DNA from: Thecamonas trahens ATCC 50062
Lineage: Eukaryota; Protista; Apusomonadida
DNA length: 18,133 nucleotides
Direction of reading: 5' to 3'
Assembly (NCBI RefSeq): GCF_000142905.1
Contig: NW_013657625.1
Coordinates: forward strand, 1 to 18,133
Shown: in pieces, positions 1,168 through 18,133 of the stretch
Numbering within the stretch: the first letter of the stretch is position 1
How the letters are laid out: each line of letters begins with the position of its first letter
The notes under the pieces: generated by a model
Databases searched by the model: none
Seen by the model: the letters and a program-made list of their open reading frames with translations, nothing else
What the model was told of the DNA's origin: nothing
Program-made: the position numbers and the translations under genes

Positions 1168-2082
1168 CTACGCCGTCGCAGGGAAGCCGGCGTAGACCAT
1201 CGACTCGATGCCGGCGCAGTCGACGCCGGCCTTGATCCAAAAGTGGCCCGCAGGCACTCCCATCGGCGTCGTCGCCGGCCACGCCTCGCCCCACGAGTTC
1301 TGCACAAGCCACGCTGGGCCGTGACCCATCATGTCGTCGTCCCATCCCACAATCATCACCGAGTGCATGCCCGTGAACCGTCCGCCGTCCGAGAGGTGGC
1401 AGCCGTCGAACACCACCCCGCCCGCAGGGTACTCCTGAAACTTGGCAAAGACATTGAACGTCACATCAACCGGCCCACCCATGATCGCTCTCTTGATAGC
1501 GGCAATGTGCGATGCTGGATCAATGAACGAGCCCACGTGCGTGTAGTTGGCCGCCGCGTACGTCTTCCACGCCACGCCAGGCGCGCTGCACTGGGTCGGG
1601 CACGCTGGCACCTTGCCGTCGCCCGACACATACGGCACACACTCGAGAGTGGGAATGCCGTGCTTGGTCAGATCGTGCCACGCGCGCCCACCGAGCACGC
1701 CCATCTCGCACTTGAGCACATCGTCGCACGAGACCAGCGCCTGTGGCGAGAGTACTACCTTCTCGCCGGCGTAGATGCACGTCCGCGCCGAGAGAACTTC
1801 AGAGGCCGCAAAGGCCCAGCACGATCCGCATCCGCCCTGGTTGAGCACCGGTGGGAGGCAGTCCGGGAACGTCTCGTTGACCATAAACCGCTTCGGCAGC
1901 CCCGCAGCCCGTCCGCTCGCCGCCACCGCCACCTCGTACTGCGCCTGCGGCAGCGGCGCACCTGTTGGCGTCCGCGCCACACCCATGCCACCTGTTGCCG
2001 CCGCGTGCCGCACCACCGCCGCCAACACCACCATCGCCACACTCACCACCACCACCACCAACCTTGCTCTTGCTCCTGCCAT
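1168..2082 (-). CDS. Papain-family (C1A) cathepsin B-like cysteine protease with signal peptide
   Basis: Catalytic Cys motif QGGCGSCWAF, LSPQALVSCD, GPVDVTFNVF, catalytic His in HSVMIVGW and Asn in QNSWG. Hydrophobic N-terminus. The ATG has a gccATGG context. Confidence 0.93.
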   Translation of the reverse strand: MAGARARLVVVVVSVAMVVLAAVVRHAAATGGMGVARTPTGAPLPQAQYEVAVAASGRAAGLPKRFMVNETFPDCLPPVLNQGGCGSCWAFAASEVLSARTCIYAGEKVVLSPQALVSCDDVLKCEMGVLGGRAWHDLTKHGIPTLECVPYVSGDGKVPACPTQCSAPGVAWKTYAAANYTHVGSFIDPASHIAAIKRAIMGGPVDVTFNVFAKFQEYPAGGVVFDGCHLSDGGRFTGMHSVMIVGWDDDMMGHGPAWLVQNSWGEAWPATTPMGVPAGHFWIKAGVDCAGIESMVYAGFPATA

Positions 2083-2214
2083 GGCGAGAGTGAGTGGAGT
2101 GGGCTACAATGCCGTTGCTGTTGCCCTCGCTCCCGCTCTGTCCCCCCCCCTCCCCCCTCCCATGTGACTTTGTCAAAGTAATGCGTATGATCGTCATTGC
2201 CGGCTGCCAAGGCC

Positions 2215-2274
2215 ATCGTGATCATGATCGCGATCACGATCACGACGACCACTGCTACGATCATGACCATGATC
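2215..2274. repeat. Degenerate GATCAY/GATCGC hexamer repeat in the cathepsin-SGTA divergent spacer
   Basis: atcgtgatcatgatcgcgatcacgatcacgac...gatcatgaccatgatc; perfect 9-bp inverted arms at 2215-2223 and 2232-2240. Confidence 0.7.
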
Positions 2275-2348
2275 CCCCAACACCTCCCCCACCTTGTCCT
2301 CTCCCCCCCCCCACCTCACCCTCCACCACCCACCCACACGCATACACC

Positions 2349-3401
2349 ATGTCGGACCACGCCATTGCTCAGGCCATTGTCGGGTTCCTCAACTCGGTTG
2401 TCGCCGCGCCGCCTGCTGGTGTTGACGGCGACTCGCTCTCGGTCGCCGCCGAGTGCATCGCCGACGCCTTTGGCCTCGCACCCGAGACGAGCAACACCAC
2501 GCTGCGCGACATGTTTGCGGCTTCGGCGTCTACTTCTGCACCGGCGGCCGCGCCAGAGGCAAGCCCGCAACACTCTGAGCGCCTGCAGGCATTCCTGGAC
2601 AACGTCGCCGCCCAGGGCTACTTTGCCGGGGTTGAAAAGGGCACGCCCGAGTACGCTCAGCGCGAGGCGGCGGCCATCGCCAAGTTCGAGGCCCGCCTGG
2701 CCGCCGCTGCCAACAAGGCCCCGGCATCCGAGGCTGACAAGGCCAAGGCCGCCGCGCTCAAGGCGGAGGGCAACGCTGCGCTCAAGGACGGCCGCTTCGA
2801 CGACGCCATCGCAAAGTACACGGCCGCCATCGCCGCCGACGACTCCAATGCTGTGTACTTTGCCAACCGCGCCGCCGCCCACGCCATGAAGAGGGACCAT
2901 GACGCGGTCATCGAAGACTGCGAGCGTGCCGTCGCTGTCGACCCGACGTACACCAAGGCCTACCGTCGCATGGGCGCAGCCTACATGGCCAAGGGCAACC
3001 CGCGCGCTGCCATCGACAACGCCTACAACCCGGCGCTCGCCGTCGAGCCCGACTCGGAGCTTACTCTTACCGAGCTTGCCAAGGCCCAGGCCGCCCTCTC
3101 GGCCGCAGATGCCGCCTCGCCGGCCGCTTCCGTCACTTCGGCGGAGCCCGCCGACGCTGCCGCGCCCGGAGCCACGCCCGCCGGCATGCCTGCAGGCATG
3201 CCGGCAGGCATGCCCGATCTCTCCAACCTCGCGTCCATGTTTGGCGGCGCTGGTGGCGCCGGCGGCGCGCCCGACCTCTCCTCGCTCATGGGCAACCCTA
3301 TGATCCAGCAGATGGCCTCGCAGATGGCGTCCAACCCCGAGATGCTGCAGAACCTCATGGGCATGATGGGCGGTATGGGCGGCATGGGCGGCCAGCAGTA
3401 G
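2349..3401 (+). CDS. SGTA: Small glutamine-rich TPR co-chaperone SGTA/Sgt2 (GET pathway), about 350 aa
   Basis: True start is taken as accATG at 2349 (MSDHAIAQAIVGFL). N-terminal dimerisation motif DSLSVAAECIADAFGL, three TPRs (LKAEGN...YFANRAAA...YTKAYRRMG) and an STI1-like M/Q-rich tail (LMGNPMIQQMASQMASNPEML). Confidence 0.9.
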   Translation: MSDHAIAQAIVGFLNSVVAAPPAGVDGDSLSVAAECIADAFGLAPETSNTTLRDMFAASASTSAPAAAPEASPQHSERLQAFLDNVAAQGYFAGVEKGTPEYAQREAAAIAKFEARLAAAANKAPASEADKAKAAALKAEGNAALKDGRFDDAIAKYTAAIAADDSNAVYFANRAAAHAMKRDHDAVIEDCERAVAVDPTYTKAYRRMGAAYMAKGNPRAAIDNAYNPALAVEPDSELTLTELAKAQAALSAADAASPAASVTSAEPADAAAPGATPAGMPAGMPAGMPDLSNLASMFGGAGGAGGAPDLSSLMGNPMIQQMASQMASNPEMLQNLMGMMGGMGGMGGQQ

Positions 3402-3410
3402 TCACCGCGA

Positions 3411-4646
3411 TCATCTCTTGCCCAGCCCTGCCGCAAGTTTGCGGAGCGCAGCCTTGCGGATAAAGGTCTTGTGTACCTCGAGCGCGGGCCGGACTACCGC
3501 GTCTAGCACCTGCAGTACCTCGTCGTCGCCCATCCTGAGTGCCGCCTTGACGTAGCTAAACAGGAGCGCTCCGTACTTGCCGTCGCTCGCCGAGGCTTCG
3601 GCGAGCGCCGCTATCGCAACCAGCACGGCTTTTGCTGGCCCAGGTCGCGCGAGGTCGGCCACCGCATGGCTCGATGCCTTGCCATCGACAACATGCTTGA
3701 GCAGCGCGAGGCTGCCGGAGCTGCCCAGCACCTCGGCGCTCGCACTCGCCACGCTGGCAAGCACAGGATCAAGCACTGCCGGCCAGCCCAAGCACTCCGC
3801 CGCGTCGGCGAGCAGTGCCTTCATCGCCTCGACCGCGCCCACAGCGCCTGCAGCTGCCAACGGCGCGACCAGCGATCTGACGCTAACTTCAGGAAACATG
3901 GCCACGCAGCCGCGCGCCGCGTCCAGTACCCGCCGCGAGACCGAGGCCTCCGCGGCTGCCATCAGCGGCAGCAGCACGTGTCCGAGGCATGCCGCCGCGT
4001 TTGCCCGCAGCGTCTCGCCATCCGCAAGCAAGCTCACCAGTTCCAAAACCGCATCCTCGCCCGCTCCTTCGCTCCACCCGTTGGCAAGTGCGCCTTTCAG
4101 CGCAGGGTCTGTCCGCAGCACCGCGAGCTCGTCCGCACTCAGCGCACACCGCCCGATCTTGGCAAGAGCTGCTTCCACTGCCGCCAAGTTTCCCAGCGTG
4201 TTGTCTGACTGGCGCACACAGCCCGCATGGGTCTGTGAGGCCTCCTTCTGCCGCTTCGGAGGCCGATGCCCGAGCTCGCCGCCCGCCGCCGTGACTGACG
4301 GCGGCGGCTCGCGAGCCGGCGGAAGGCGCCGTAACGCGGCCAGAGCTGCCTGCACCGGCGCCTGAGCAGGACTGAGTGCGGGCTCGGCGTAATGCGCGAT
4401 GCACGAGCCGCGCCAGGCTGCAGCAGCAGCCGTGTCTGAGCGCAGGACTCTCCGCGAGACGGTGACGGCGGCGTGAGCCATGGCCGCAGAAAGGTCGTGG
4501 TTTGAGGCGGCGAGGGCGGCCCGCGGCCACGAGACCAAGCTGGGGGAGGCGTAGGCGTACTGCTCTGCGGCCCAGACGACGTCTGCCGGGCGTCTGCCCG
4601 AGTGGATGCCCATAAGCAACGCAGCGATGGCGTGCCATGGCTCCAT
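3411..4646 (-). CDS. FANCE: Fanconi anemia group E (FANCE)-like protein
   Basis: The helical C-terminus KYGALLFSYVK...ALEVHKTFIRKAALRKL resembles, from memory, the FANCE C-terminal signature (human AYAKLMLTVMTK...ALEPNTTFLRKSLKAAL). VLLPLMAAAEASVSRRVLDAA...FP...LVAPL resembles [21 protein letters not shown]...LLDPVL. Central basic NLS-like RPPKRQK. gccATGG start. Confidence 0.65.
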   Translation of the reverse strand: MEPWHAIAALLMGIHSGRRPADVVWAAEQYAYASPSLVSWPRAALAASNHDLSAAMAHAAVTVSRRVLRSDTAAAAAWRGSCIAHYAEPALSPAQAPVQAALAALRRLPPAREPPPSVTAAGGELGHRPPKRQKEASQTHAGCVRQSDNTLGNLAAVEAALAKIGRCALSADELAVLRTDPALKGALANGWSEGAGEDAVLELVSLLADGETLRANAAACLGHVLLPLMAAAEASVSRRVLDAARGCVAMFPEVSVRSLVAPLAAAGAVGAVEAMKALLADAAECLGWPAVLDPVLASVASASAEVLGSSGSLALLKHVVDGKASSHAVADLARPGPAKAVLVAIAALAEASASDGKYGALLFSYVKAALRMGDDEVLQVLDAVVRPALEVHKTFIRKAALRKLAAGLGKR

Positions 4647-4721
4647 GGCGTGGCACCTTGGTCGACGAGTGTTTACACGGGAGCGCGACGCCGGCCGGTC
4701 GGCCGGCGCGGGAGAGGCTTG

Positions 4722-6015
4722 CTACTCGGCCGGCGGCTCAAAGGGCATGATGGAGCCAAAGGTAAAGTGCTGGATGACCGGAAACTTGGAGAGCACCTCG
4801 CCCTTGTACATCTTGATCATGCCGCCGTTGATCTTGGTCCAGTGGATGACCGAGGTGATCGAGTAGAGGCACGACGAGTGCTCCTCAAAGGTGCCCGACT
4901 TGAGCGAGCACACAAACTTGATGGCGGCCAGGTACATGTAGTCCTGGGCGTACATATCAACAATGTCGGCCTGGAGGACAGACTTTGGCTTGATAAACGC
5001 GTGCTCGCGGAGCTGCGCCGAGCCCCAGAGGAACGGCATGAACTGGTAGTCGTCGAGCCCAAAGGCGCCGCGCGAGCCGGCCGGCTCCAGCGAGTACTTG
5101 GTCTGAAGCTTGCGGGCAAGCGAGAGGTAGCTGTCGGCAAAGACCCGGAACGCCAACGCCGCATACTCGTCGGGCTTGACGTACCCGATCATGGCCAGCG
5201 CCGCCATGAACGCCACAAAGTACATCTCGTGCCCGGTCCCGTAGTCGCGACGCAGCCGGTTGCCAAAAGACTCGGAGAGATATGCCACAAGCTCGATGGC
5301 CGGTGATGGCGACTCGGTCGGCTCGGTGGCGCCGACAGCTTCGGCAGCCCCGCCTCGCGCCTCGGCGTGCTCCGCCGCCCAGCCGGACGCCTCGAGCGCA
5401 TCGTCGATGAGACCGGGCATGGCCGCCACAGCCTTGTCCAGCCACGTCACAAACGCCTTGTTGCCGAATCGCATCGGCTGATCCACCGGCTCGATCTCGT
5501 CGACCATGGCGTCAAGCTTGGCCAGCATCTCCACCAGCGCCTGCACCGCCGGTGAGAGCGGCAGCGCCCCCTCGGCCGACTCGGCGTACTCGCGCATCGA
5601 TCGGCCCTTCACCGCACTGTTCACCGCCTGAATGAAACCCATCAAGTTGCCGTATGCCTCTGACTGCAGCCACCCACCCATGTCCATCGGCGACAGCACC
5701 CGTCGGACCTGTTCTCCAACCCGCCAGCCGTCACCACCCCACATCCCGTCCCGTCCCGTCCGCCACCACCACGCCGTGCAGCGCCCACACCAGCCCATAC
5801 CCCCACCCCCCCCACCAGCAACCAAACAGCGACCATTGTGAGTGTGTCCCGTATACCACTCTCGGCCCCATCACCCATTCCGCCCCCCTCGCCTCCCCCC
5901 CCCCCCCCCCTTGCCGTCCTCCCGCTCACCGCGACCCACACCCACCTACCGGGGTCCGGAACGGGCCAGTCTTGTACGGCAGCTCAGGAGCTGCAAGCGC
6001 ATCGGAGTCAGCCAT
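4722..6015 (-). CDS. PTPA: Phosphotyrosyl phosphatase activator PTPA/Rrd (PP2A activator); 2 exons, 6015-5950 and 5708-4722, about 350 aa
   Basis: Family motifs RFGNKAF, SFGN..R.DYGTGHE, LEPAGS.G..GLDDYQF and KMYKGEVLSKFPVIQH. Splicing a phase-0 GT-AG intron gives MADSDALAAPELPYKTGPFRTP|VRRVLSPMDMGGW, which restores the conserved F..P.+.I....DM..W N-terminal motif. Confidence 0.93.
5709..5949 (-). other. Spliceosomal intron of PTPA (241 bp, phase 0)
   Basis: Donor ccg|GTAGGT at 5949, acceptor GAACAG|gtc at 5709, putative branch site GGTGAC at 5735-5730. Low-complexity G-rich content. Removal keeps the frame and restores homology. Confidence 0.85.
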
Positions 6016-6133
6016 TTTCTGTTCTGTGTCTATCTACGTATGGCTTGTCCTCGTGCTTGTGCTTGTGCTCGTGGTCTTGGTCTTGGTCGTCTCCTCACCT
6101 CGGTCTCCGAGTTGAGTGTCGAGCCACGGCTTC

Positions 6134-8502
6134 CTACGCTCCGCCGGCGAGGGCTGCCTCGGCGGCGCGGACCTCGTCGGGATCGGCATCGACGCGGGCG
6201 GCGGCAGCAAGGAAGGCTTCGTCGGTCTCTGCCCGGTCAAAGTCGGCCAGGTACTCGGATCGATGGAGGCAGACAATGGCCTCGAGGCTCGGGTCGTGCT
6301 TCTGCGCGATCTCGAGAGCGCGCGGCCAGTTGAAGAGACGCATGTTGAGCTCGACGGCCCAATAGAAGAGGCGGGCCTGGAGGAGGCCAGCCTCGGCCTC
6401 GTCGGGCTTGCCGCAGAAAAGAGCTAGCTCGGCGTGACGGCGCTCGGTGGCATCGATGGCGGCGATACGGGCAATGTGCTCGAGCTTGTCGACCTGGTTG
6501 ACCTGCGCAAAGGCAATCTCAGCCGGGCCCAGCTCCTTGTGGGCGACGGCGAGCGCGGCGAGGATGGCCCACTCCAGCGGCTGGTTGACGAACCGGCAGA
6601 GGTTGACGGCGTCCTTCATGACCGCGCTGCGGCGTACTGGGCAAGCAACTGCGGGTAGGGCGAGACCATGCTTGCGGCCAGCGCGCCGTCTTGGGTCCGA
6701 ATCGAGACGTGGGTGTCGACAAACGAGAGCAGCGTCGGTGAGCGACCGAGCGAGGTGCCGACCGAGCTGTCAACGGTCTTGGTGGCGTCAGTGAGCGAGG
6801 AGGCAACAAAGACGACGCCCGGGTAGTACCAGGTAACGAGCGACGAGTCGCAGTACGCCACCAGCATGTCGGCGCACTCGTTCCACACCACCGACGAGGC
6901 CATGGCGGCGAGCCGCACCGGTGCCGGCCGGACCACCGACGTCATGAACAGCTCGCCAGCCGAGTCGATGTAGACGAGCTTGCGATCGGCCGGCGAGCCG
7001 ACCTGCGAGAGGGCAATGTGGACGACGTCGCGCGAGGCGCCGACGACGTCGTCGAGCACACGCCCAGACCCGGCGTCAAAGAGAAGGATCCGCGACCGTG
7101 CACTTGGATCAATGAGTGCCACCGTGTCCGGTGAGAGTGCCACAGACGACTGGGTGAGCACGTCGCCGGCCGCCAGCCGGATCTTGGGGGACATCACCGG
7201 GCGCCCGTCGTAGCTGTGGATGGCAAGACCGGTCGACGAGTCGAGGAGCGCAAAGTACTTGGCGCACTGCAGAATGGCGTCGATGCGGACGTGGGCCTCG
7301 ATGATGACCGGCGTCGACCAGGCCGACGTCGAGTAGATGTACACCTGATGGGTCGTTGCCGCCACCAGATGGTCCGCTGCCAGCGAGAGCTTGATGACTC
7401 GGTCGCGGAAGACGAGCTCCTCCTCAAACTCGTTGGCAACGTCGAGGACTCGGACCTTGGTTGGCTCAATGAGGGTCACGTCGTAGTTCCGCCACTCGAC
7501 GTGCCGCCCGGTCACGTAGCCGAGGACAAGCTCAGCGCCGGCGCCGGCGCCGACGACATGCGACGAGTCTGGCGACCACGCCAGCGCCTGCAGCGAGCCT
7601 GCGTGCTGCGCCTCGGCGCGCGCGTGGATCCATCCGGCCGCGTCGCAGAGCGCAAGCAGCTCAAAGGCGCCGACGGCAAAGACCGTGCCGTCGGGCGCCC
7701 AGCGGGCGGAAGTGACGACGTGGTCAAACGGCGACGACGCGTACAGCGGGCGGCCAAAGGCGTCCCACACCTTGTACCGCGCATCCTCGCCGCCACTCAC
7801 AATCAGGTCCGAGACCGGCGACCAATCGAGGGCGAGGACAAGGCCGTCGTGCGCCTTCCACGACTCAACCTTGCCTGCCGGGTCGAGCGGCTTGACCACG
7901 ACCGAGGCGCCCGAGGTGAGCGCGAGCGCCGACGCACCGCGGCTCGCTCCCGCCTTGCTCTTGCCCTTGGCACTGGATCCGTTCGAGCCGGGCGCCGAGC
8001 CCCAGGCCAGCGCGTACACCGGGCGCGGCTGAGTGTAGAGGACCGAGCGGAGGACGCCAGCGCGGGACCAGACCTTGAGCGCGCCGTCCTCGCCGCAGGT
8101 GGCCAGAGTGGCGCCATCGCGTGTATACGCCGCGTCAAGCACGGCACCTTCGTGTGCGCCTTCGACCGCGCTCTCCCACTTGGGCTGCGTCGAGAACAGC
8201 CGCAGGGCACCGTCCGACGTGCCGACAACGCCTGCCCGCGGCGGGCCGGCAGCCTTGCCCGCGCCTGCGCTTCCGCTTCCGCCAGCGGAAGCGCCGCCGA
8301 CTGCCGGCGGTGCCAAGGCCATGCACGTGGCGTAAAAGCCGTCCAGCTCCAGCACAGCCTCCAGCGGCTCGCCCTCTGCGTTCCACTCACGCAGCGCGCC
8401 ATCGTCAGCCACAGACACCACGGTGGTGTCCGAGGCCCAGCCAACGCCTGTGATACCAGCCGTGTGGCTCCCGCTCCGGCCCATGTACGTCACCAGCTTC
8501 AT
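6134..8502 (-). CDS. IFT80: Intraflagellar transport protein 80 (WD40 propellers plus helical C-terminus), about 789 aa; 1-nt frameshift at about 6617
   Basis: Start accATG at 8502 (MKLVTY...HTAGITGVGW). Motifs WKAHDGLVLALDWSPVSDLIVSGGEDARYKVWDAFGR, FRDRVIKLSL and STSAWSTP. The second ORF (6134-6619) continues the homology: KDAVNLCRFV...WAILAALA...LFNWPRALEIA. The two parts are out of frame by one base. Confidence 0.92.
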
Positions 8503-8976
8503 GGTGGTGGTAGGTTTGGAAGTGGGGTAGGTAGGTAGGGGGTAGGGTTGGGGGAGTTGAGGGGGGTGGGGGATTGGTTTGTTTGTGTGGTGGGTGTGGT
8601 GGGTGTGGGTGTGGGTGTGGGGTGGAGGCAGCTGGTGGCTTGGTGGTGGTCCTCGTTCCCTGCGGTTGGCGCCAACTGGTGCCCCCCCCCCCACACCCTG
8701 ACACCATTGGTCGGTCCGCAGTCGCAGCGCACACTGATGCAGCACTCGCAGACAACACAAAATCGTCCCCCCTCCCCCTACACACACACAATACCGCCCC
8801 CAGCCCAATCCAACTCCCCCCCCCCCTCGTCATCCTCCCACACTTCATCGCCAGTCACCTCGATCAATGGCACCCCCCCAACCTCCCCATCACACCACAT
8901 TGACGCGCAGTGCGACTAACCGCACCCACAGCCAGACTCAGCAAAGCACACCCCTCGTCTGCGCATCAACATCACC
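8503..8976. promoter_or_regulatory. Probable bidirectional promoter between IFT80 and Qri7
   Basis: 474-bp head-to-head spacer, G/T-rich on the left and C/A-rich on the right. Palindrome GTTGGCGCCAAC at 8665-8676. CCAAT pentamers at 8573-8577(-), 8706-8710(-) and 8805-8809(+). Confidence 0.6.
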
Positions 8977-10191
8977 ATGTTGTGGGCAAGGCTACAAGCA
9001 GGACATGCTATACGCCCAAGTCGCTCCGCATGGGTACGGGCTGCATCGGCTGCGGCCTCGCTCTCGTCGGCCCGTCCTACGGCAGAGACGGTCATGCTCG
9101 GCATCGAGACGACCTTTGATGACACAGGCATCGCCCTTGTCCGTGGCGATGGCACCGTCCTTGGCGAGGCCGTCTCGTCGCAGCGGCGGCTCAACTCGCA
9201 GTTTGGTGGAACGGTGCCGTCGCTGGCGGCCGAGGCGCACAGGGCCCGGTTCCGCGGCGTTCTTGCCGATGCGCTCGCCGATGCGGGCGCTACGCTCGCA
9301 GACGTCGATGCTGTGGCGGTTGCGGTCGGTCCAGGACTCTCGGCTTGTCTGCGTGTCGGTGGCGATCTCGCCAACGGGCTAGCCGCAGCAGCAGGGCTTC
9401 CGCTGTATGCGGTGAACCACCTTGAGGCGCACCTGCTCACCGCCCGGTTGACCGAGCAGCCGCCACCGACCTTTCCGTTTGTCTCACTCCTGGTGACCGG
9501 CGGCAACACGCAGGTCATCCTCGCCGAGGCCTTTGGTCGCTACACTCTGCTCGGCCAGACCCTTGATGATGCCATCGGCGAGGCCTTTGACAAGACCGCG
9601 CGTACGCTCGGCGTCGATCTTGCAGCGGGCTCGGGCGGGGCGGGGGTCGAGACCCTGGCAGCGGCCGCTACCGCGCCGGCCACCTCGGCCATCCGCTTCT
9701 CTATCCCCATGAAGAGCCACGACTCGATGGACTTTTCATTCTCGGGCCTTAAGACCGCGCTCGCCACCCGCGCCGCCACCGAGGCCGCCGCCGCCGGCGT
9801 CGATGCGCCGGCCGCCCTGCCACTCGCCACCCGCGCCGGCCTCGCCGCCGCCTTCCAGGACGCGGCCTTTGGCCACGTGCTCGACAAGACAAAGCGGGCG
9901 CTGGCACACGCACGGGCACAGTTGGCGCTTCCAGATGACGCGCCGCCGCTCCCGCTTGTTCTCTGTGGCGGGGTGTCGGCCAACGCCGCGCTGCGGGTCG
10001 AACTGGAGGCCGCCACCGCCGACGCCGGCGCCACTCTGGTCACCACGCCGCTGAGGCTGTGCACCGACAACGGCGTCATGATCGCGTGGGCTGGCCTCGA
10101 GCACATGGCCGCAGGCACAGAGCCCGTCGACCACGTCGTCACCGACCCGCGGCTCGTCCTCACCCACGCCTCGTTCTCCACCAAGCCATGA
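8977..10191 (+). CDS. OSGEPL1: Mitochondrial tRNA N6-threonylcarbamoyltransferase Qri7/OSGEPL1 (TsaD/Kae1 family)
   Basis: LGIET..DDT, GPGL, metal-binding HLEAH, TGGNT, GQTLDDAIGEAFDK, DFSFSGLKT, GGVSAN and CTDNGVMIAWAG. The R/A/S-rich, acid-free N-terminal extension is consistent with a mitochondrial presequence. Confidence 0.92.
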   Translation: MLWARLQAGHAIRPSRSAWVRAASAAASLSSARPTAETVMLGIETTFDDTGIALVRGDGTVLGEAVSSQRRLNSQFGGTVPSLAAEAHRARFRGVLADALADAGATLADVDAVAVAVGPGLSACLRVGGDLANGLAAAAGLPLYAVNHLEAHLLTARLTEQPPPTFPFVSLLVTGGNTQVILAEAFGRYTLLGQTLDDAIGEAFDKTARTLGVDLAAGSGGAGVETLAAAATAPATSAIRFSIPMKSHDSMDFSFSGLKTALATRAATEAAAAGVDAPAALPLATRAGLAAAFQDAAFGHVLDKTKRALAHARAQLALPDDAPPLPLVLCGGVSANAALRVELEAATADAGATLVTTPLRLCTDNGVMIAWAGLEHMAAGTEPVDHVVTDPRLVLTHASFSTKP

Positions 10192-10199
10192 TAGCGTCG

Positions 10200-11183
10200 T
10201 CACACGTCGGTGATGATCGGCGGCAGCGGCGCCTCAACGTAGCCCACCGCAAACGGCAGCTTGGTTACCAGTGGCGTTACCGCGGTCTCGCCCCACTGTT
10301 CGTGGAATGTCGGCTCGCGCGCAAGCGCGTCGACCACACGCATCGACTCAGCGTCTGCCACCCGGCCAAACACAGTGTGTCCGGCGCCCCACTCGGGGTG
10401 CGGCGCGAGCGCAATGAAAAAGTGCGGGCCAGATCCGATGAGACACACATCGCCACGCACCACAAGCGGCGCATCCTCCCGCGGCAGTTCCCAGTCACCC
10501 GGCGCCGCGTCGGTCGCAAACCGGCCTTGCAGCAGCGCGTACGGTGGGCCGTAGAAGCCATCCGGATCAAACGCCTCGCCCATGCTCCAGTTGCCCGGCA
10601 CAGCCTCGGCCCGATAAAAGTTGCACCCAGCATCGGCCGTTGCCTGTGGGGCGTCTTCCGCAGGCAGCGCCGCGCACGGCGGCATCGTCCCCGCCTCGGC
10701 CTCGGGCGATCCGATGGTAAAGGCCACAATCTTGGCCACCGTCTTGGGCGCCGCCCGCTTACGCAGCGAGATCACCACCATGCCCTTGCGCGTGATGAGC
10801 GAGAGCGACGGCGGCGGTGGCGGCGGAGCCACTGCAGCTTCGACTGCCGCAGCCACCGCTGCACCACCGGCGCCCGTGGCGTCCGTGCCCACGCCCGCGC
10901 CTGGCTCTCCCACCGCCAACACCGCAGCTGCGGCTGCAGCCTCTCCAGCCAGTGCCTGCGACACCGCCCACCACCACCACCCACCGTACGCTGCCAGTGC
11001 ACCGACCAACAGCAGTGCCGCCATCAAGCACATGGGCGTACTCGCTTTCCCGCCGCCGCCCTCGCCGCCACCTCCGCTCCGCCCGCCGCCTCCACTCCGC
11101 CTACCGTCCGCGGCGCCACCCACTGCGCCCACCACACCTACTGCACCTGCCCCGCCGTCCCCGCCTGGTCCCCGTCGCAACAT
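10200..11183 (-). CDS. Membrane-anchored cyclophilin-like (PPIase-fold) protein
   Basis: Cyclophilin-fold elements ITRKGMVVISL..AAPKTV, FYRAE, ALLQG, GSGPHFFIAL and HTVFGRV, after a TM helix (CLMAALLLVGALAAYGGWWWW) and an Ala/Pro linker. Start is probably atcATG at 11183; 11033 is an alternative. Confidence 0.75.
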   Translation of the reverse strand: MLRRGPGGDGGAGAVGVVGAVGGAADGRRSGGGGRSGGGGEGGGGKASTPMCLMAALLLVGALAAYGGWWWWAVSQALAGEAAAAAAVLAVGEPGAGVGTDATGAGGAAVAAAVEAAVAPPPPPPSLSLITRKGMVVISLRKRAAPKTVAKIVAFTIGSPEAEAGTMPPCAALPAEDAPQATADAGCNFYRAEAVPGNWSMGEAFDPDGFYGPPYALLQGRFATDAAPGDWELPREDAPLVVRGDVCLIGSGPHFFIALAPHPEWGAGHTVFGRVADAESMRVVDALAREPTFHEQWGETAVTPLVTKLPFAVGYVEAPLPPIITDV

Positions 11184-11388
11184 GATCCGCCCCCTTTGCC
11201 TGTGTCTGTGGGTTGAGTGTGGCGGTAACACTGTGCGCTGCTCACTCCCATCGCCACAACACAGCTTGGAGTTGCGCAGGTACCCATGCGCCATCACAGC
11301 TGCAAACACAGGGCAGCGTCAACGCTGATAGTGGCCGAGCGGTACCGACTGTTGGTGGTACTGGTCAGCATGTGTATTGGCCATGTGT

Positions 11389-11477
11389 GATGGCCATGTG
11401 CGGCGGCATCACAGCAAGTGCGATGGCCATGGGTGGTGGCATCACAGCAAGTGCGATGGCCATGGGTGATGGCATCA
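11389..11477 (+). repeat. 33-bp tandem repeat, about 2.7 copies
   Basis: Units gatggccatgtgcggcggcatcacagcaagtgc (11389-11421), gatggccatgggtggtggcatcacagcaagtgc (11422-11454) and partial gatggccatgggtgatggcatca (11455-11477). Confidence 0.9.
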
Positions 11478-11758
11478 TGTCTGTGCCTGCTTCCCCGCAA
11501 CGCACCAATCAATATTCCATCGCCTCCATGGCGACCATCGCCACCATCCCCGCCACCATCCCCGTCAATACCACCGCCCTCACCACCCTCGCCATCCGCG
11601 ACCATCCCCGCCAACAGGTGATCAAAAAGGTTGTGCTTCGACAGAGTGCTTCGACCGAGTGCTTCGAAGGAGACCGCCGACCTGACCTACCATGACTACC
11701 ACACGCCACACTCATTTGCCCATGGCCAGAATCGGGGCCACACACCTGACGCTCGACT

Positions 11759-14700
11759 ATGTCCACATCGCCGCTGTTGCCGCTGCTTCGCGAGCTGGTC
11801 TCCCGCCTTGCCGCGGCCTGCCCGCAGTCGTCGGCCACTACCGATGCGGTTGTTGACATGCTCTCGGGACACCCGCTGTTTGATTTGTCGCGGAAGGACG
11901 TGGCCAAGTTGCGCAAGGCAGCGGGCGATGCCGCTCTTCGCGGCCGGGCTCCTGAGCTATCGCACAACACTGCGCTCGTCATCCTCCCACCTGTCGAGCT
12001 GTGGGAGCCCATCAACGCCATCCGCGCTGAGCTCGAGCCGCATCATCTGACCATCTGGCCGCCGCACATCACCCTCGCCTACCCCTTCCTCCCAGTCCAT
12101 GCATGGCCCGACAACCTCGCCCCGCTTGCCGCCGCAACTGCCTCCATTGACCCGTTCGATGTCACTTTACTCACCTTTGGCACATTTAGTCGCGGCAAGA
12201 ATGGTATGCTCACCTACCTCGAGCCCGACCCAGAGTCGGCCTCCGGCATCACCGCCGTCCGTGCTGCGCTTTGTGATCAGCTCTTCCCGTACCTCCCGGC
12301 AACGTTTACACCACACCTCACTGTCGGCCGAGGCCAGTCCGATCCTCAGGCTCCGCGCCTTGCTGCTCACTGGACGCCGATCACCTTTCCGGTTAGCCAT
12401 CTTGCGCTCCTTGCCCGCCCGCACCGCGACGCGCCGCTTGAGATCATTGCCGAGATTCCACTCCGTGGACAGGGCGAGCTCTTGGCCACGGATATTGCTA
12501 CCATGGTCGCGTCGCTTGCTGCGCCACACACACCGCCTGCGCCTCGCAAGCTATCTCATCACGTGCCGGATGCCGTCGCTACCGCCAACGCCAAGCTCGT
12601 CGCCGCCGCTGCTTCCAATCCTGAGCTCGCTCCCGAGGCTGTCGAGCTGGCAACCGACGAGCTCGAAGCCCTCAACGCCATTTATGCCGACGACTCTGAA
12701 GTCGAACTGACGACCGACGCCACCTCCGTCTCGCTCACCCATCGCTCTGCCGGCGTTCGCCTGATCATCAACAAGGACGCCCTCTATCCGTTTACCGTTC
12801 CCACCATCTCGGTCGAGACCCGCTCGACCGAGACTGCGCCCTGGCATGCGGCTCCTGGGCTGAGCAAGCAGCTGTACGTGACTGCACTCGAGGCTGCCGG
12901 CTCGCCACTCTGCTACGAGTTGTTTCTTGCGGCGCTCGAGTGTGTGGCAGAGCAGCCGACAGCGGCACCTGCGCAAACCGGGACAACCCTCCCTCTCGCC
13001 CAGAATGCCGGAGACAGCGCGGGCACTGACAGCAGCGTCAGTAGCGCTGTAGCCTACATCCGCGGCCTCGTGCCCGCCGCACTCTCGGTCGCCCAGGCCA
13101 ACGCCCTCATCGCGCGCATCGATCCGAGTGCCGAGCTGGAGGACATGCCTATTACCCTTCCGGACACATTGTCCGAGCCTATCACCGCCGCGCCGGTGTG
13201 GATCTCTGCCGAAAAGGCGGCGTTGACTGCCGCCTTTGGCGTCAATGTCACCGTCGAGCCATGCGAGTTCACCGATGCTGTCCGCGGCTTTGACACCGTC
13301 ATCGCCATCCATATTCGAGCTCGCCATCCGGCCCAGCTCGGAAACTTTGTCCCACGCTCGCTCCGTGACACGCTCTCCACCATCCGCCATCCACCGGACC
13401 ATGTTTTTGCTGACGTCCGCATCCTCGCATCTGCCGTTGCCGTTGGCCACTTTGAGGTTGACGTTGTCAACAGCCTCGGCCTCACCGCCGGCGACATTCT
13501 TGCGCTCGACGGCGCTCTCTCGCTCGCTGCTGCTCGTCCGTCAGACTCCTTGCCGGCGATTGTGGCTGTTGCTGCTGGCGATCCGCACCTTTGCTATGCG
13601 CCGCTAGGCTGCCTGCCGATCGCGACGGCTTCCTGCATTGCCCAACAGTACGTGGCTGACGTTGCAACTGCTACAACCGCAGACAGCGGCGACGTCCCAA
13701 TGGTTCCGGCTGACCTCAAGCTTGTCGGCCTCCGCCCGGCCACAACTTCGATGACCTATGCTGCGCTCTCGATTGCGGCCGCTGAGGACGCTGCCCTTGG
13801 TGCCGCCCGCACCGCCGCCGCCGCCGACGGCTACCAAATCACCCATGCCGACCGAATCACCTCGCCTGCGCTTGTTGCGCGCTTCGCCGCCGCCGTGTCA
13901 TCCATGCCCACATCCGGCAAGTCGGTCCTTGCCCCGTTTGTTGGCTTCCACGGGACGTGGTCTGCTGACGCCGCCACCTCTATTGTCGAGTCGGGCATCC
14001 TTGCTCCGCTTGAAGTGACCGAGCGCGGCGAGCTCCTGCACATGGCGACAGGGGCAATCTATGGCAACGGCGTCTATGTTGCGCCTGGTCTGAGCAAGGC
14101 CGCTATGTACACCCGCGCCGACGCCGACGGTGCCTTCTCGGTCTTTGCCGCCCTTGTTGTCCCCGGCGTTGCACGGCGCGTTGTTTTCGACAGGCAGGCC
14201 GGATCGCGCACGCATGCCTCACGCGAGTTTGTCGCCGGCTTTTTCGACTACTTTACCTTTGACCCGAACTTTCACTCCAACGTGGCGCCGTCAGGAGAAG
14301 AGGTTGTCATCTTTGACTCTGCTCGGGTCCTGCCGCTCCTCCAGATCACCCTGGTTCCGGCGACTGTGGGTAGTGCCACTGCGCTTGCCGCCGATCCGTA
14401 CGCGCACCGTCAGCTCGCCCCGGCATCGTCTATTCTTCCGGGCTCACAATGGGCGCCGTTCACTGCTCGTTCACGCAAGTCGCGGCGCGCACTGGCAGCT
14501 GGTGCCGGAAAGGACCGCCGCAGAGCGTTCGTCCCGCAGAACGCTGTGCCTGATGCTGCTCCGCCGCTCCTCGCCTTCCACCGCGTCCCAGGCACCGCTG
14601 ACAAGTGGCTTCTCGACGTCTCGCCGCGGCTTCCGCTGCAATGGGGCCTGCCGGTGACCAAGGTGCATATGGTCTTTATCATCGAGGCCTCGGCGCGACT

Positions 14701-17700
14701 TGATGAAGCCTACACCAAGTTTGTGCTTCCAACGGCCTGTGAGCTTGTCCGCCGCGTCTCACCCGACGCCGCGTCTGCGGTAATCTTCGGCCGCGATGCG
14801 ACCGTCTACACCCCGGCCGCCGTCACTTCACACGCGTTCTTTGACACGCCTCGCATCCGCAACCGCACCCTTGACGAGAATGTCAGCTTTGGGGCAGGGT
14901 ATGAGGCTGCCATCACCCACGCACTCGACGCCGACGAGCGCCATCGGGACCAGATCCGCGCGGTTGCCCATGCCCGCGCGCTGGCCACACTGCGCCGGTT
15001 CGGCAAGCCAACCACCGATGCTGCGATCCGACGCCAAATCAAGTCCGAACTACATGCGCCAGATCTTGCTGCAACGGTCCACTACATGCTTGTCTCACTC
15101 TCGCGCGGTGTGGACTCGATCAGAACGCCGAGTGAGCTTGCAGCGCTCTGGAAGCGCTCGGCCAGGTATGTTTCCGGCGCCGGGCTTATGGCCTCGCTTA
15201 CGCCCATCAATCTCGGCAAGACTAGCAGCGTGGACCATGTTCTTGCCGCCAGAGCTGCAACGGCAGCGTCGTCGACTACGTACGTTTCGTATGACACTGC
15301 ACCGGTCTTTTACGCCCATCGCCTCCGCGCGCTTCCTGAAGTTGCCAAGCGCGTCGCTATCAAGCTCAAGGCTGCCGTCCGCAAGGTCTCGGTCCGGCTG
15401 AGCCTGCCAACGGAGGCCAGTTCGATTGCTCAGGGCTTTGTCACCTCGTTCACGTCGCGAGTGAGCCACGCAGTGTCGCTGGCGATCGCTCCCGGCAGCG
15501 GGACGAACGGAGTGCTCTACCACGGTGCGACACCGCCTCGGACAATCAGCATCGGCGAGTTTGAGCATCCGATTCCGGTCGTAGCCCATGTGCCACGGCC
15601 GATGGAGAACGACTCGACGCCGGGCTCGCTGCTGGTTGCCGAGTCGACTGCCGGATCACTCGAGGCGCTGCGGGCTCAGGGCACGCTCCTCGCTGTACTC
15701 CGCGGACTCATCGATGACATCAAGGTTGCGGCGGTGACCGGCAAGGATGTGCGGCTGGCGTTTGAGACGCTCAGCACCCTGATCGACGGCGTGAAGACAG
15801 CGGGTCCGAGTCACGGCGCTCTCGCTGCCATGTCAGCATGCGAACGGATGGAGACCGTTCGCGCCAAGGCCCGCCTCGTCAACGAGCTCGAGGCCATGTG
15901 CAACGGCGTTCGCGATGCCCTGGTGGTGGCTGCCGAAGCCAAGATGAGCCCGGTCGCCCAGTCCAAGTGGCTGGCTCAGTCGGAGAACCTCAAGTACGGC
16001 GCTGCCGCTGGGAGGCGATCGGTAGCAGTGGTCGACGCTTCCGATGTCGGCCGCGACCTCGTTCGCCGCCTGGACGCGGCACTAGATGATGTTGACCTCT
16101 CGCCACCGGCGCACCGAGAGATCGAGCTCGCCCAAGCTGCAGTCGACGCTATCGGCGACTCTCCCGAGACTGCGCTTGCCGGCTTTGTTCTCCCGGACCT
16201 GCTGTATGGCTTTGGTAGTCTCGGCCTGGGCATTGTGGTGCGGCGGAGCAACGCTAGCGTCGCCGATCCGTGGCAGATTCATGTCGAGACGGTGACGAGC
16301 GCGTGGGTCGAGACCAGCCGAGTCATGTGCGGCCTTCGCACAGGTTCGCCGCTGTGTATCGATTGGTACCCGGGTGGCGCAGAAGGGCGTCGCAACTCAC
16401 TGAGCTCGTCTGATGACGACAGCGACGTCGACGATGCTGGAGAGAGCCGCAGCAAGACCAGCCGGCCGGTGGTTCGAGTCAGGCCGGTGGCGGCTGTCGA
16501 GGACGTGCTGGTGGTGATGCGGCCGGGCCATGCCGCGGCACCGGTGCTGGAAGCATACGCCAAGTCTGCGCTCCACACTGCGTACCTCGGCGTGGTCTTT
16601 TGCCGCAATCCGGTGCTGGCGCTGCCGGCGCAGCGGACGGCGCTACTGACGGTGGCACTCGTCCAGGCCGTCAACCAGCTGCTTGATCCGGCGTGCTGCG
16701 AGCCTGGCTTTGTGGCTGTGGTGTGGACGCTGCTGACCTCGTTGCGGGCGCGGATGGGGATTAACGGCGCATCGCCCGAGCAGTTCTGGAACGGAGTGAT
16801 CTACAAGCTCATGGAGCCACATCCGGAGCGGCGACTGACCGAGGCTCCCGAGGACGATGTGTCATCGGTGGCCAAGGTGCTAGGCCCGCTGATGGTGTGC
16901 CACGAGGCTGTGGATGAGGTTGGTCTCTTTGAACTCGCTGCAGCGCCGCAGCTGTCTGCTGTGGCGCTGGCCCTGCTGGCTGAGTCGATCTCGCGGTCGT
17001 CGCGCGTCTACCTCAAGTGCCGTCTTGCAAGACGCGGCGTGGCCAACCACGCGGCTGCAATGCGCGACGAGGCCCAAGCGGTCCTGGCCCGGGCGCTCGG
17101 CATTAGCCCTGAGTCAGTGCCGGCGATCTCGCCGAGCGATGAGGTCATCGACCCGCCGGCGTCGGCCTTGACCTTTGGCAGCGAAGCCGACATCGACCGC
17201 GCGCTGCGGGCGTCGAGCAAGCTCTTCCGCAAGCCGGGGTGGACCAATGTACCGCCGACGGCCGTGCTGGCCTGCCTGCAGATGGCACGGGTCGTCCAGG
17301 GCTTTGGCCGCGAGCTTGCGCAGCCGACCGCTGACCCGCCACCGGCCTTTGTGACAGCCGTATGCAGCACGTTTCGTGGGCTTTCGATGGGCGCGTTCCT
17401 CACCCAATTTGTGGAGCCCGGTGCTGGGCGCGAGCTCGACCGGCGGGCGCTGCAGGCTGCGCTCTATGTCCAGGGCATCGAGTTCCACTCATCCAAGCTC
17501 CGCCGCGGTGGCGAGATTGGCGAGCTGCTTGAACCGCATGCATTGGTGGCCAGCGCGGCGGCGCGGGCGCGCAAGACCATGTATGCTGCGGCGCGGAGTG
17601 TCAAGCTTGCCCGACTGGCCCGAACCCGCAAGCTCAACGCGCGCGAGCTCCGGAGGCAGGAGAAGCTCGCTGCGCTCGCTGAGTTTTACACAGCCCATGC

Positions 17701-18124
17701 CGGTGTACCGAAGCTCTTCAGCGAGGCCGAGGTGGCCGCCATGAACCGTGCAGCACCCAGTGCCGTTGATGCCGTCGTCCGCGAGCCATCGGGCCTTCTC
17801 CGCCACCGATGCTGCTTCGAGGCCTGCCCACGCTTTTTAGAGTACCTGGGAACCCAGGCAGATCGGCTGCACGGCACCCGCAAGGGCCTCTTCACCCATC
17901 TTGCCCCGATCACCCAGCGTTCTTGCAAGGTTCCGTACTTCCCAGGCTGGCATTTGATGGCCATCATGCTCTGGCGCAAGACCCGATCGGCCCACAATGG
18001 CCGCCAGACCTTTATCACCCGTCTTGTCAACCACTACCGCGACCGCACAAGCTCGTCAGCTGTCGTCGCCTCGCTTGCGGAAGCAACCTGGCTCTCGATC
18101 GAGGCCATGGTCGCCGCTGATTGA
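11759..18124 (+). CDS. 2121-aa multidomain protein: 2H phosphoesterase - RWD - (RWD-like) - PARP-like ART - vWA-like - uncharacterised helical region - Cys/His cluster
   Basis: Single 6.4-kb open frame with an in-frame TGA 12 nt upstream of actATG and a stop TGA at 18122-18124. Domain motifs are given in the sub-features. Confidence 0.9.
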   Translation: MSTSPLLPLLRELVSRLAAACPQSSATTDAVVDMLSGHPLFDLSRKDVAKLRKAAGDAALRGRAPELSHNTALVILPPVELWEPINAIRAELEPHHLTIWPPHITLAYPFLPVHAWPDNLAPLAAATASIDPFDVTLLTFGTFSRGKNGMLTYLEPDPESASGITAVRAALCDQLFPYLPATFTPHLTVGRGQSDPQAPRLAAHWTPITFPVSHLALLARPHRDAPLEIIAEIPLRGQGELLATDIATMVASLAAPHTPPAPRKLSHHVPDAVATANAKLVAAAASNPELAPEAVELATDELEALNAIYADDSEVELTTDATSVSLTHRSAGVRLIINKDALYPFTVPTISVETRSTETAPWHAAPGLSKQLYVTALEAAGSPLCYELFLAALECVAEQPTAAPAQTGTTLPLAQNAGDSAGTDSSVSSAVAYIRGLVPAALSVAQANALIARIDPSAELEDMPITLPDTLSEPITAAPVWISAEKAALTAAFGVNVTVEPCEFTDAVRGFDTVIAIHIRARHPAQLGNFVPRSLRDTLSTIRHPPDHVFADVRILASAVAVGHFEVDVVNSLGLTAGDILALDGALSLAAARPSDSLPAIVAVAAGDPHLCYAPLGCLPIATASCIAQQYVADVATATTADSGDVPMVPADLKLVGLRPATTSMTYAALSIAAAEDAALGAARTAAAADGYQITHADRITSPALVARFAAAVSSMPTSGKSVLAPFVGFHGTWSADAATSIVESGILAPLEVTERGELLHMATGAIYGNGVYVAPGLSKAAMYTRADADGAFSVFAALVVPGVARRVVFDRQAGSRTHASREFVAGFFDYFTFDPNFHSNVAPSGEEVVIFDSARVLPLLQITLVPATVGSATALAADPYAHRQLAPASSILPGSQWAPFTARSRKSRRALAAGAGKDRRRAFVPQNAVPDAAPPLLAFHRVPGTADKWLLDVSPRLPLQWGLPVTKVHMVFIIEASARLDEAYTKFVLPTACELVRRVSPDAASAVIFGRDATVYTPAAVTSHAFFDTPRIRNRTLDENVSFGAGYEAAITHALDADERHRDQIRAVAHARALATLRRFGKPTTDAAIRRQIKSELHAPDLAATVHYMLVSLSRGVDSIRTPSELAALWKRSARYVSGAGLMASLTPINLGKTSSVDHVLAARAATAASSTTYVSYDTAPVFYAHRLRALPEVAKRVAIKLKAAVRKVSVRLSLPTEASSIAQGFVTSFTSRVSHAVSLAIAPGSGTNGVLYHGATPPRTISIGEFEHPIPVVAHVPRPMENDSTPGSLLVAESTAGSLEALRAQGTLLAVLRGLIDDIKVAAVTGKDVRLAFETLSTLIDGVKTAGPSHGALAAMSACERMETVRAKARLVNELEAMCNGVRDALVVAAEAKMSPVAQSKWLAQSENLKYGAAAGRRSVAVVDASDVGRDLVRRLDAALDDVDLSPPAHREIELAQAAVDAIGDSPETALAGFVLPDLLYGFGSLGLGIVVRRSNASVADPWQIHVETVTSAWVETSRVMCGLRTGSPLCIDWYPGGAEGRRNSLSSSDDDSDVDDAGESRSKTSRPVVRVRPVAAVEDVLVVMRPGHAAAPVLEAYAKSALHTAYLGVVFCRNPVLALPAQRTALLTVALVQAVNQLLDPACCEPGFVAVVWTLLTSLRARMGINGASPEQFWNGVIYKLMEPHPERRLTEAPEDDVSSVAKVLGPLMVCHEAVDEVGLFELAAAPQLSAVALALLAESISRSSRVYLKCRLARRGVANHAAAMRDEAQAVLARALGISPESVPAISPSDEVIDPPASALTFGSEADIDRALRASSKLFRKPGWTNVPPTAVLACLQMARVVQGFGRELAQPTADPPPAFVTAVCSTFRGLSMGAFLTQFVEPGAGRELDRRALQAALYVQGIEFHSSKLRRGGEIGELLEPHALVASAAARARKTMYAAARSVKLARLARTRKLNARELRRQEKLAALAEFYTAHAGVPKLFSEAEVAAMNRAAPSAVDAVVREPSGLLRHRCCFEACPRFLEYLGTQADRLHGTRKGLFTHLAPITQRSCKVPYFPGWHLMAIMLWRKTRSAHNGRQTFITRLVNHYRDRTSSSAVVASLAEATWLSIEAMVAAD
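11969..12463 (+). other. 2H phosphoesterase (LigT/2'-5' RNA ligase-like, LENG9-type) domain, aa ~71-235
   Basis: TALVILPP..LW..I..IR, WPPHITLAYPF (H103) and FTPHLTVG (H186): two HxT motifs about 80 aa apart. Confidence 0.88.
12656..12946 (+). other. RWD domain, aa ~300-396
   Basis: DELEALNAIY helix, YPxxxP motif (YPFTVP, Y343) and terminal GSPLCYELF. Confidence 0.8.
13832..14353 (+). other. PARP-like (diphtheria-toxin fold) ADP-ribosyltransferase domain, aa ~692-865
   Basis: FHGT (H731), SIVESG, GAIYGNGVY (Y773), SKAAMY and EEVVIFDSARVLP (E848, aligning to PARP1 EYIVYD). Confidence 0.85.
14666..15367 (+). other. Degenerate vWA-like domain, aa ~970-1203
   Basis: Strand/helix order HMVFIIEAS - SAVIFG - VSFGAGYEAA - YMLVSLSRG - LTPINLG matches the vWA pattern hhhhDxSxS - hh.F - T.h..Ah - hhhTDG - h.hGhG, with the MIDAS residues substituted. 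Confidence 0.5.
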
Positions 18125-18133
18125 TCGGCAAAT

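Follow-up and report, generated by a model that had tools for sequence, protein, structure and literature searches.

The question raised by the window analysed here, a stretch of 18,133 bp that forms the start of scaffold C55 in the genome of the protist Thecamonas trahens ATCC 50062 (28.7 Mb, 131 scaffolds, 63-72% GC), is whether its last open reading frame (ORF) truly encodes a single giant protein in which a 2H phosphoesterase domain, an RWD domain, a PARP-type ADP-ribosyltransferase (ART) domain and a vWA domain precede a long C-terminal extension, and, if so, what kind of activity such a protein might have. It is clear that the giant protein is encoded by a real single gene and that its 2H-RWD-ART-vWA architecture is real. 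The evidence for this comes from the domains themselves, from the integrity of the locus and from a family of related proteins in eukaryotes and giant viruses, and it is set out in that order before the possible mechanisms are weighed.

The gene and its domains

The frame is uninterrupted over 2,121 codons from its ATG start and remains open for only three codons further upstream (2,124 aa). Its translation is identical to a protein deposited in NCBI, UniRef and EukProt (P0151), and the ORF therefore corresponds to an existing, unnamed T. trahens gene model. Its features, in window coordinates and with residue numbers (aa) of the protein, are as follows.

11759..18124, + strand: single ORF of 2121 aa, the deposited T. 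trahens gene model
11987..12421, + strand: 2H phosphoesterase domain, aa 77-221 (Pfam PF13563, E 1.3e-25)
12065-12067 and 12314-12316, + strand: HxT motifs beginning at H103 and H186 (motif search)
12647..12925, + strand: RWD domain, aa 297-389 (Pfam PF05773, E 1.4e-5)
12926..13825, + strand: region between RWD and ART, aa 390-689, no Pfam match
13826..14356, + strand: PARP-type ART domain, aa 690-866, with H731, Y773, Y784 and E848 (family profile against PDB)
14654..15385, + strand: vWA domain, aa 966-1209, with a long helical insertion and a degenerate metal-ion-dependent adhesion site (MIDAS; E976-A-S-A-R980)
15386..15640, + strand: beta-sandwich packed on the vWA domain, aa 1210-1294
15659..16345, + strand: helical domain plus small alpha/beta unit, aa 1301-1529 (model and conservation)
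16214-16273, + strand: conserved motif of G1486, G1489, R1496, P1504 and W1505 within the helical domain (conservation)
16376..16480, + strand: disordered Ser/Asp-rich linker, aa 1540-1574 (model confidence, pLDDT, below 50)
16502..18121, + strand: all-alpha C-terminal domain, aa 1582-2121, 540 residues (model and conservation)
17696..17953, + strand: His/Cys cluster of H1980, H2016, C2018, C2023, H2047 and H2065 (82-100% conserved in 61-70 sequences)

The 2H domain scores 90.7 bits with PF13563, for which the cut-off is 27, over profile positions 1-149 of 152, and its two motifs, H103-I-T and H186-L-T, both align with those of Bacillus subtilis YjcG (PDB 2d4g); one H-x-T/S motif in each half of the fold, together with a profile score over the curated cut-off, is what marks a member of the 2H superfamily. 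The RWD domain reaches 25.7 bits with PF05773 (cut-off 22.8), or 32.2 bits in the scan of the genome, and in orthologues the same domain is found with up to 52 bits and E 7.6e-14. Within it the stretch YPFTVP at aa 343-348 is an instance of the YPxxxP motif typical of RWD domains. Between the RWD and ART domains, aa 422-690 are common only to T. trahens and its closest relative, and conservation across the whole family sets in from about aa 640. A candidate second, degenerate RWD domain at aa 485-606 had no Pfam match, aa 422-570 being common only to the closest relative. T. trahens also encodes a stand-alone 2H protein of 330 aa (scaffold C6, about 261900-262890) that shares 48.5% identity with aa 11-241 of the giant protein; its deposited name, 'polynucleotide adenyltransferase', is not backed by its Pfam content (2H only). 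Searches of the PDB by phmmer with this paralogue, with the RWD segment and with the ART segment returned nothing significant.

The ART domain is brought out by a family profile (A1) built from 22 full-length members, which matches 80 PDB sequences at E<=1. All of the 60 listed are PARP-family catalytic domains, the best being PARP4 (E 2.9e-6) and tankyrase-1 (E 2.4e-5), then PARP12 and PARP10, with PARP4 only about 3 bits ahead of tankyrase. In the alignments of this profile with PARP4 and tankyrase, H731 (of HGT), Y773 (of GxGxY) and Y784 occupy the columns that hold the His and Tyr residues of the NAD+ pocket, and E848 shares its column with the Glu of the tankyrase AEYVIY motif, which we take to be the catalytic Glu. 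In sequence the NAD+ pocket of the T. trahens protein, Glu included, is intact. The His and Tyr of the triad are nearly invariant across 57 ART-bearing relatives. Because H-Y-E is retained, the T. trahens ART is, as far as its sequence tells, probably catalytically competent.

The remainder of the protein was modelled with AlphaFold2. A single-sequence model of aa 651-1314 was unusable (pLDDT 33); the model of aa 930-2121, built with an 85-sequence alignment (A3), has a mean pLDDT of 88.3 and a predicted template modelling score (pTM) of 0.77, and most of its C-terminus exceeds a pLDDT of 90. The vWA domain in this model has the expected Rossmann-like fold. No part of the family is more widely conserved than the all-alpha domain at the C-terminus. 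About 25 of its polar residues are near-invariant, among them E1742, R1746, R1749, R1915 and R1938, and within its His/Cys cluster H1980 (100%), C2018 (99%), C2023 (99%), H2047 (98%) and H2065 (97%) hardly vary, a pattern that is read here as a probable zinc site. Pfam, searched with the 22 full-length members, and the PDB, searched with the A1 profile, gave zero matches C-terminal of the ART, and the His/Cys cluster matches no known E3 or zinc-finger model in Pfam. A feature search of the Atlas returned PEX8 TPR-like helical families at 0.90. This label is discounted, since the Pfam set used lacks that family and a second Atlas query was blank, and it is taken to mean 'helical repeat-like' at most. 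The first-pass annotation, made from the letters of the window and its ORFs, had described one intronless ORF of 2121 aa with both HxT motifs of a 2H domain, an RWD domain, an ART domain with H731-Y773-E848, a vWA-like domain after it and about 900 aa of unassigned C-terminus. All of these assignments held, and the unassigned part proves to be real, folded and conserved, with about 800 confidently modelled residues in unnamed domains that include a near-invariant His/Cys site.

A long frame of this kind might nevertheless be an artefact, whether adjacent genes had been fused, the sequence had been misassembled or a frame had stayed open by chance in GC-rich DNA. The end of the window, 16090-18133 (2,044 bp), recurs at 100% identity on scaffold C28 (403267-405310), directly after a gap of 14,153 N, and is annotated there as the 675-aa AMSG_06439; the local assembly is therefore imperfect. 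A further gap, of 14,746 N, lies right behind the window on C55. An RNA run of T. trahens was sought among the public runs and none was found, and expression of the gene is thus predicted only, a point that also counts against the functional interpretation favoured below. The simplest reading of the C28/C55 repeat is redundancy in the assembly. Because the 16,089 bp of unique sequence in the 18-kb window contig come close to the 14,153 estimated for the C28 gap, the contig probably belongs in that gap, in which case AMSG_06439 is probably a duplicate of the tail of the giant-protein gene. A contig from a public run covers 15637-16384 with no difference, and the sequence is therefore continuous across the duplication boundary at 16090. 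Taken together, contigs from four small public runs, whose library kind is not on record, match 12359-14898 and 15637-17826 with zero differences and zero joints. Against an artefact there is also the homology, which spans the 2H domain, the RWD domain and aa 422-2100 in one frame, and the same domain order in complete transcriptome ORFs of orthologues from Salpingoeca infusionum, Hartaetosiga, Clastostelium and Mastigella. These ORFs are the best available evidence, although from other lineages, for expression of the fusion as a single chain. The artefact explanation is close to refuted, and we regard it as hardly credible.

Relatives in eukaryotes and giant viruses

An exhaustive HMMER search with aa 930-2121 recovered 253 representative proteins at E<=1e-3; for 46 the match is as strong as E<=1e-30. 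Word-indexed protein searches, made with the full protein and with the 22-member alignment, gave no matches and are uninformative given these 253, the method being weak for a query with 17% Ala and for an alignment whose words came only from its poorly conserved first 500 residues. Members include Mastigella and Clastostelium in the Amoebozoa, the choanoflagellates S. infusionum and Hartaetosiga balthica, the chytrids Chytriomyces, Siphonaria, Physocladia and Zopfochytrium, Paulinella and Papus in the Rhizaria and the dinoflagellate Cladocopium, and many more lie on metagenomic contigs. The family thus ranges over Amorphea, Rhizaria, dinoflagellates and, as described below, giant viruses. Named members are annotated as 'hypothetical' or just as 'PARP catalytic domain-containing'. 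The family is apparently old in eukaryotes, and it is uncharacterised.

In pairwise HMMER alignments about aa 640-2100 are common to the entire family. A Pfam census of the 22 full-length members found the PARP domain in 12, RWD in six and 2H in four, the last being T. trahens, two choanoflagellates and Clastostelium, whose 2H domains are 28-39% identical to that of T. trahens. In a FastTree phylogeny of aa 690-2100 the 2H-bearing members are spread over three clades, and chytrids and choanoflagellates each group by taxon; these taxon-coherent clades suggest, at the level of sequence, mainly vertical descent. The closest relative, a protein of 1,746 aa that is 43% identical and starts at the equivalent of aa 422, is encoded on a TARA Oceans scaffold (2725-7965), probably from an uncultured marine relative of apusomonads. 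Because this relative does without both 2H and RWD, the core of the family is the series of ART, vWA, beta-sandwich, helical and putative zinc-site domains, with RWD as a frequent and 2H as an accessory component. It was also considered whether the presence of 2H tracks the catalytic Glu of the ART. The idea was dropped, since all four 2H-bearers have the Glu but so do P0002, P0013 and P0023, which lack 2H, and the members compared are not independent.

Some gene models of the family have additional domains. In Cladocopium goreaui (P0183/P0184) a protein kinase stands ahead of the PARP-vWA core, and in Chytriomyces hyalinus (P0171) an aspartic protease does; other assemblies of Chytriomyces have the protease as a gene of its own next to it, and P0171 therefore looks like a merged gene call. 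A member of 1,392 aa (10001-14179) is encoded on a metagenomic contig of 175 kb, whose genes are for the most part unannotated and look intron-free.

The link to giant viruses comes from a Foldseek search of the aa 930-2121 model against BFVD, which returned near full-length matches with E-values of 4e-33 to 3e-15, 1180-1342 aligned columns and 11-20% identity. The first is a Pandoravirus macleodensis 'vWA domain containing protein' (E 4.4e-33, 1,342 columns, 19% identity), and it is joined by an unnamed viral protein (E 3.4e-29), an Edafosvirus 'PARP catalytic domain-containing protein' (E 6.5e-26) and proteins of Pandoravirus inopinatum, Terrestrivirus (including one PARP-domain protein), Marseillevirus LCMAC202, Hyperionvirus, Yasminevirus and Klosneuvirus. 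Two of these homologues, going by their names, also carry a PARP domain. TM-scores are low (0.25-0.38), consistent with differing packing of the domains, and the viral proteins are likewise uncharacterised. Viral proteins annotated as ubiquitin-conjugating (E2) enzymes also occur among the matches (ranks 29, 43 and 46, without aligned ranges) and most likely arise via the vWA part. As far as predicted structures can be compared, giant viruses share the vWA-to-C-terminus platform, some with a PARP domain, and the family offers a concrete case of PARP-vWA genes common to protists and giant viruses. The proposal of the first-pass annotation that the protein might serve in anti-giant-virus defence stands in so far as a giant-virus link exists, but structural homologues speak for gene sharing and not for defence. 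PADLOC gave no match; among IMG/VR viral contigs no relative was found, and a scan for the C-terminal motif gave 30 stretches, of which 0 were confirmed. In GC content the T. trahens gene matches its neighbours, and in view of this and of its cellular orthologues it is read as a host gene and not as a viral insertion.

Known systems and possible mechanisms

PARP4, the vault PARP, has a comparable layout, in which a mid-protein ART is followed by a vWA domain and then by a long extension at the C-terminus. Among solved structures PARP4 is the best match of the family ART profile, and for the vWA-plus-sandwich part Foldseek puts ITIH1, a VIT-vWA relative of the VIT-vWA half of PARP4, first in the PDB. 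The giant protein differs in having no match to BRCT, PARP_reg or VIT in Pfam. A candidate identity as the vault-PARP orthologue was rejected, as T. trahens has a separate vault-PARP-like gene (PARP_reg-PARP-VIT-vWA, 2,080 aa, scaffold C63 132672-138914) whose product has no significant pairwise similarity to the giant protein; the family is therefore not orthologous to PARP4 despite the shared ART-then-vWA order. The genome also holds four MVP loci (C52, C46, C40 and C9). Its PARP-domain loci number about 18 in all, its RWD loci 10.

Other systems share smaller parts of the architecture. PARP6/8 have an RWD domain N-terminal to the ART, as the giant protein does, but they have no vWA and no 2H, and in the human proteins the ART is C-terminal and the RWD split behind a C4 zinc finger (PMC10450202), whereas in the giant protein the RWD is contiguous and the ART is not C-terminal. 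A Reticulomyxa PARP6/8-like protein likewise combines RWD with ART and has no vWA or 2H (PMC4245714). Sequence affinity to PARP6/8/16 was not seen, and PARP16 is not among the 60 of 80 PDB matches listed. A link between 2H and ART in the chemistry of RNA ends and of the 1'',2''-cyclic phosphate of ADP-ribose (Appr>p) is established for KptA/Tpt1 (PMC9503650). In that pathway the two are separate proteins, whereas the giant protein has both folds on one chain, and its ART is of PARP type and not of KptA type, PARP being the only ART match in Pfam. ArnB, the Sec23/24 trunk and ITIH1 resemble the giant protein in joining a vWA domain to a beta-sandwich, at about 10% identity, but have no ART, RWD, 2H or helical His/Cys C-terminus.

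The architecture is apparently undescribed so far. It does not appear in two censuses of PARPs (PMC2964712, PMC4245714), and full-text searches of the accessible literature turned up no description of it. Two further statements of the first-pass annotation, that the protein departs from PARP4 in lacking BRCT and VIT domains and that its architecture is not known from any characterised protein, agree with the Pfam matches and the distinct C63 gene in the one case and with the blank literature search and the 'hypothetical' status of named relatives in the other. PARP censuses lean largely on the Pfam PARP signature and most members score under its threshold, and the clade therefore seems to have been overlooked by them. 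It newly brings ADP-ribosylation together with an RWD (E2-like) domain, and in some lineages a 2H cyclic phosphodiesterase joins the pair. Function could be tested in chytrids or choanoflagellates if a genetically workable species among them carries a member.

The interpretation that we favour, and to which we would give an even chance, is that the giant protein is an NAD+-dependent and mainly mono-ADP-ribosylating enzyme held in place by its docking domains. It would attach single ADP-ribose units or at most short chains; the RWD domain and the vWA-to-C-terminus platform would act as protein-docking modules that keep it on a partner assembly; and the 2H domain, where present, would hydrolyse a cyclic phosphodiester arising in the same pathway, a step for which the KptA/Tpt1-2H pairing in RNA-end processing may serve, by analogy, as precedent. 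Besides the missing RNA run, several points weigh against this interpretation. Biochemically the family is uncharacterised. By itself the T. trahens sequence scores 18.9-22.2 bits with PF00644, below the cut-off of 26.7, which only P0003, P0006 and P0029 pass among 23 scanned relatives. The third triad position in the 57 ART-bearing relatives is Q in 16, E in 11-12, I in 10, V in five, L in three and other residues besides, and catalysis may therefore differ or be lost in many members; a varying third residue is seen in mono-ART PARPs too, and PARPs without the Glu remain active mono-ARTs. Of 29 relatives 12 keep the DxSxS of the MIDAS, but T. trahens has lost it, which makes metal-dependent ligand binding by its vWA domain unlikely. 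The vWA domain filled the structural match lists, VIA-align of the whole model returned the vWA region only, and the helical C-terminal fold is known from the model alone. The 2H domain, finally, is missing from most members and from the closest relative, which has no RWD either and has a divergent gene 82 bp upstream; 2H is therefore not central to the function of the family.

Three other mechanisms, and one broader conception, may be set beside the favoured one. In a ubiquitin-linked mono-ART the RWD domain would recruit an E2 or ubiquitin-like (UBL) enzyme, the vWA domain and zinc-helical platform would bind the substrate and the 2H domain would be a lineage-specific add-on. The variable third triad residue, the E2-annotated viral matches and the combination of RWD with ART in PARP6/8 and in the Reticulomyxa protein are consistent with this mechanism, but the giant protein has no visible closeness in sequence to PARP6/8/16 and its His/Cys cluster fits none of the known E3 or zinc-finger models, and we consider the mechanism possible, if unlikely. 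A second proposal is that of the first-pass annotation. At stalled or collided ribosomes the RWD domain would dock on GCN1, 2H would open the 2',3'-cyclic phosphate of a cleaved RNA and the ART would ADP-ribosylate the phospho-end so formed or a nearby protein, which would make the chain an effector of RNA damage or quality control. GCN1 is bound by the RWD proteins GCN2, IMPACT and RNF14, and phosphorylated RNA ends are substrates of some PARPs in vitro. An intact 2H domain, an RWD domain and an H-Y-E ART do lie on one chain, and KptA/Tpt1 shows 2H and ART at work on RNA ends, yet no ribosome- or RNA-binding domain was detected, the closest relative dispenses with both 2H and RWD, 2H occurs in only four of 22 members, and the varying third triad residue (Q, E, I, V) weakens the case for a mechanism shared by the whole family. 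RWD domains serve in E2 binding and kinetochore assembly as well (PMC10450202), and an RWD domain by itself is therefore no pointer to GCN1, for which it is the sole hint; the stalled-ribosome and RNA-end mechanism is speculation, and quite unlikely.

Alternatively the protein may be chiefly a scaffold, in which the ART would bind NAD+ or ADP-ribose without much catalysis, or be structural, and the conserved activity would reside in the C-terminal His/Cys helical domain. The position of the catalytic Glu is indeed not conserved, and the C-terminal domain is the best conserved of all, both in its near-invariant polar residues and in the H/C/C/H/H series (97-100%). Set against this, H731 and Y773 are nearly invariant and E848 is retained in T. 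trahens, and loss of the Glu leaves other PARPs active as mono-ARTs; a mainly non-catalytic ART is highly doubtful. The broader conception would have the family as an unrecognised clade of PARPs in eukaryotes and giant viruses, with the C-terminal His/Cys helical domain as a new module for catalysis or recognition and, in those members that bear 2H, with 2H and ART forming a single-chain NAD+-dependent system for cyclic-phosphate or phosphate RNA ends or for Appr>p, in RNA surveillance or host-virus conflict. As a whole this is rather unlikely, although less so than the stalled-ribosome mechanism.

Genomic surroundings

The neighbours of the giant-protein gene are ordinary eukaryotic housekeeping genes on alternating strands. 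Those upstream of it, in order along the window, are:

1168-11309: papain-like protease (- strand), SGTA (+ strand), unassigned 411-aa ORF (- strand), PTPA (- strand), IFT80 (- strand), TsaD/Qri7 (+ strand), cyclophilin-like protein (- strand)

The IFT80 ORF as listed (6616-8808) takes in the beta-propellers only.

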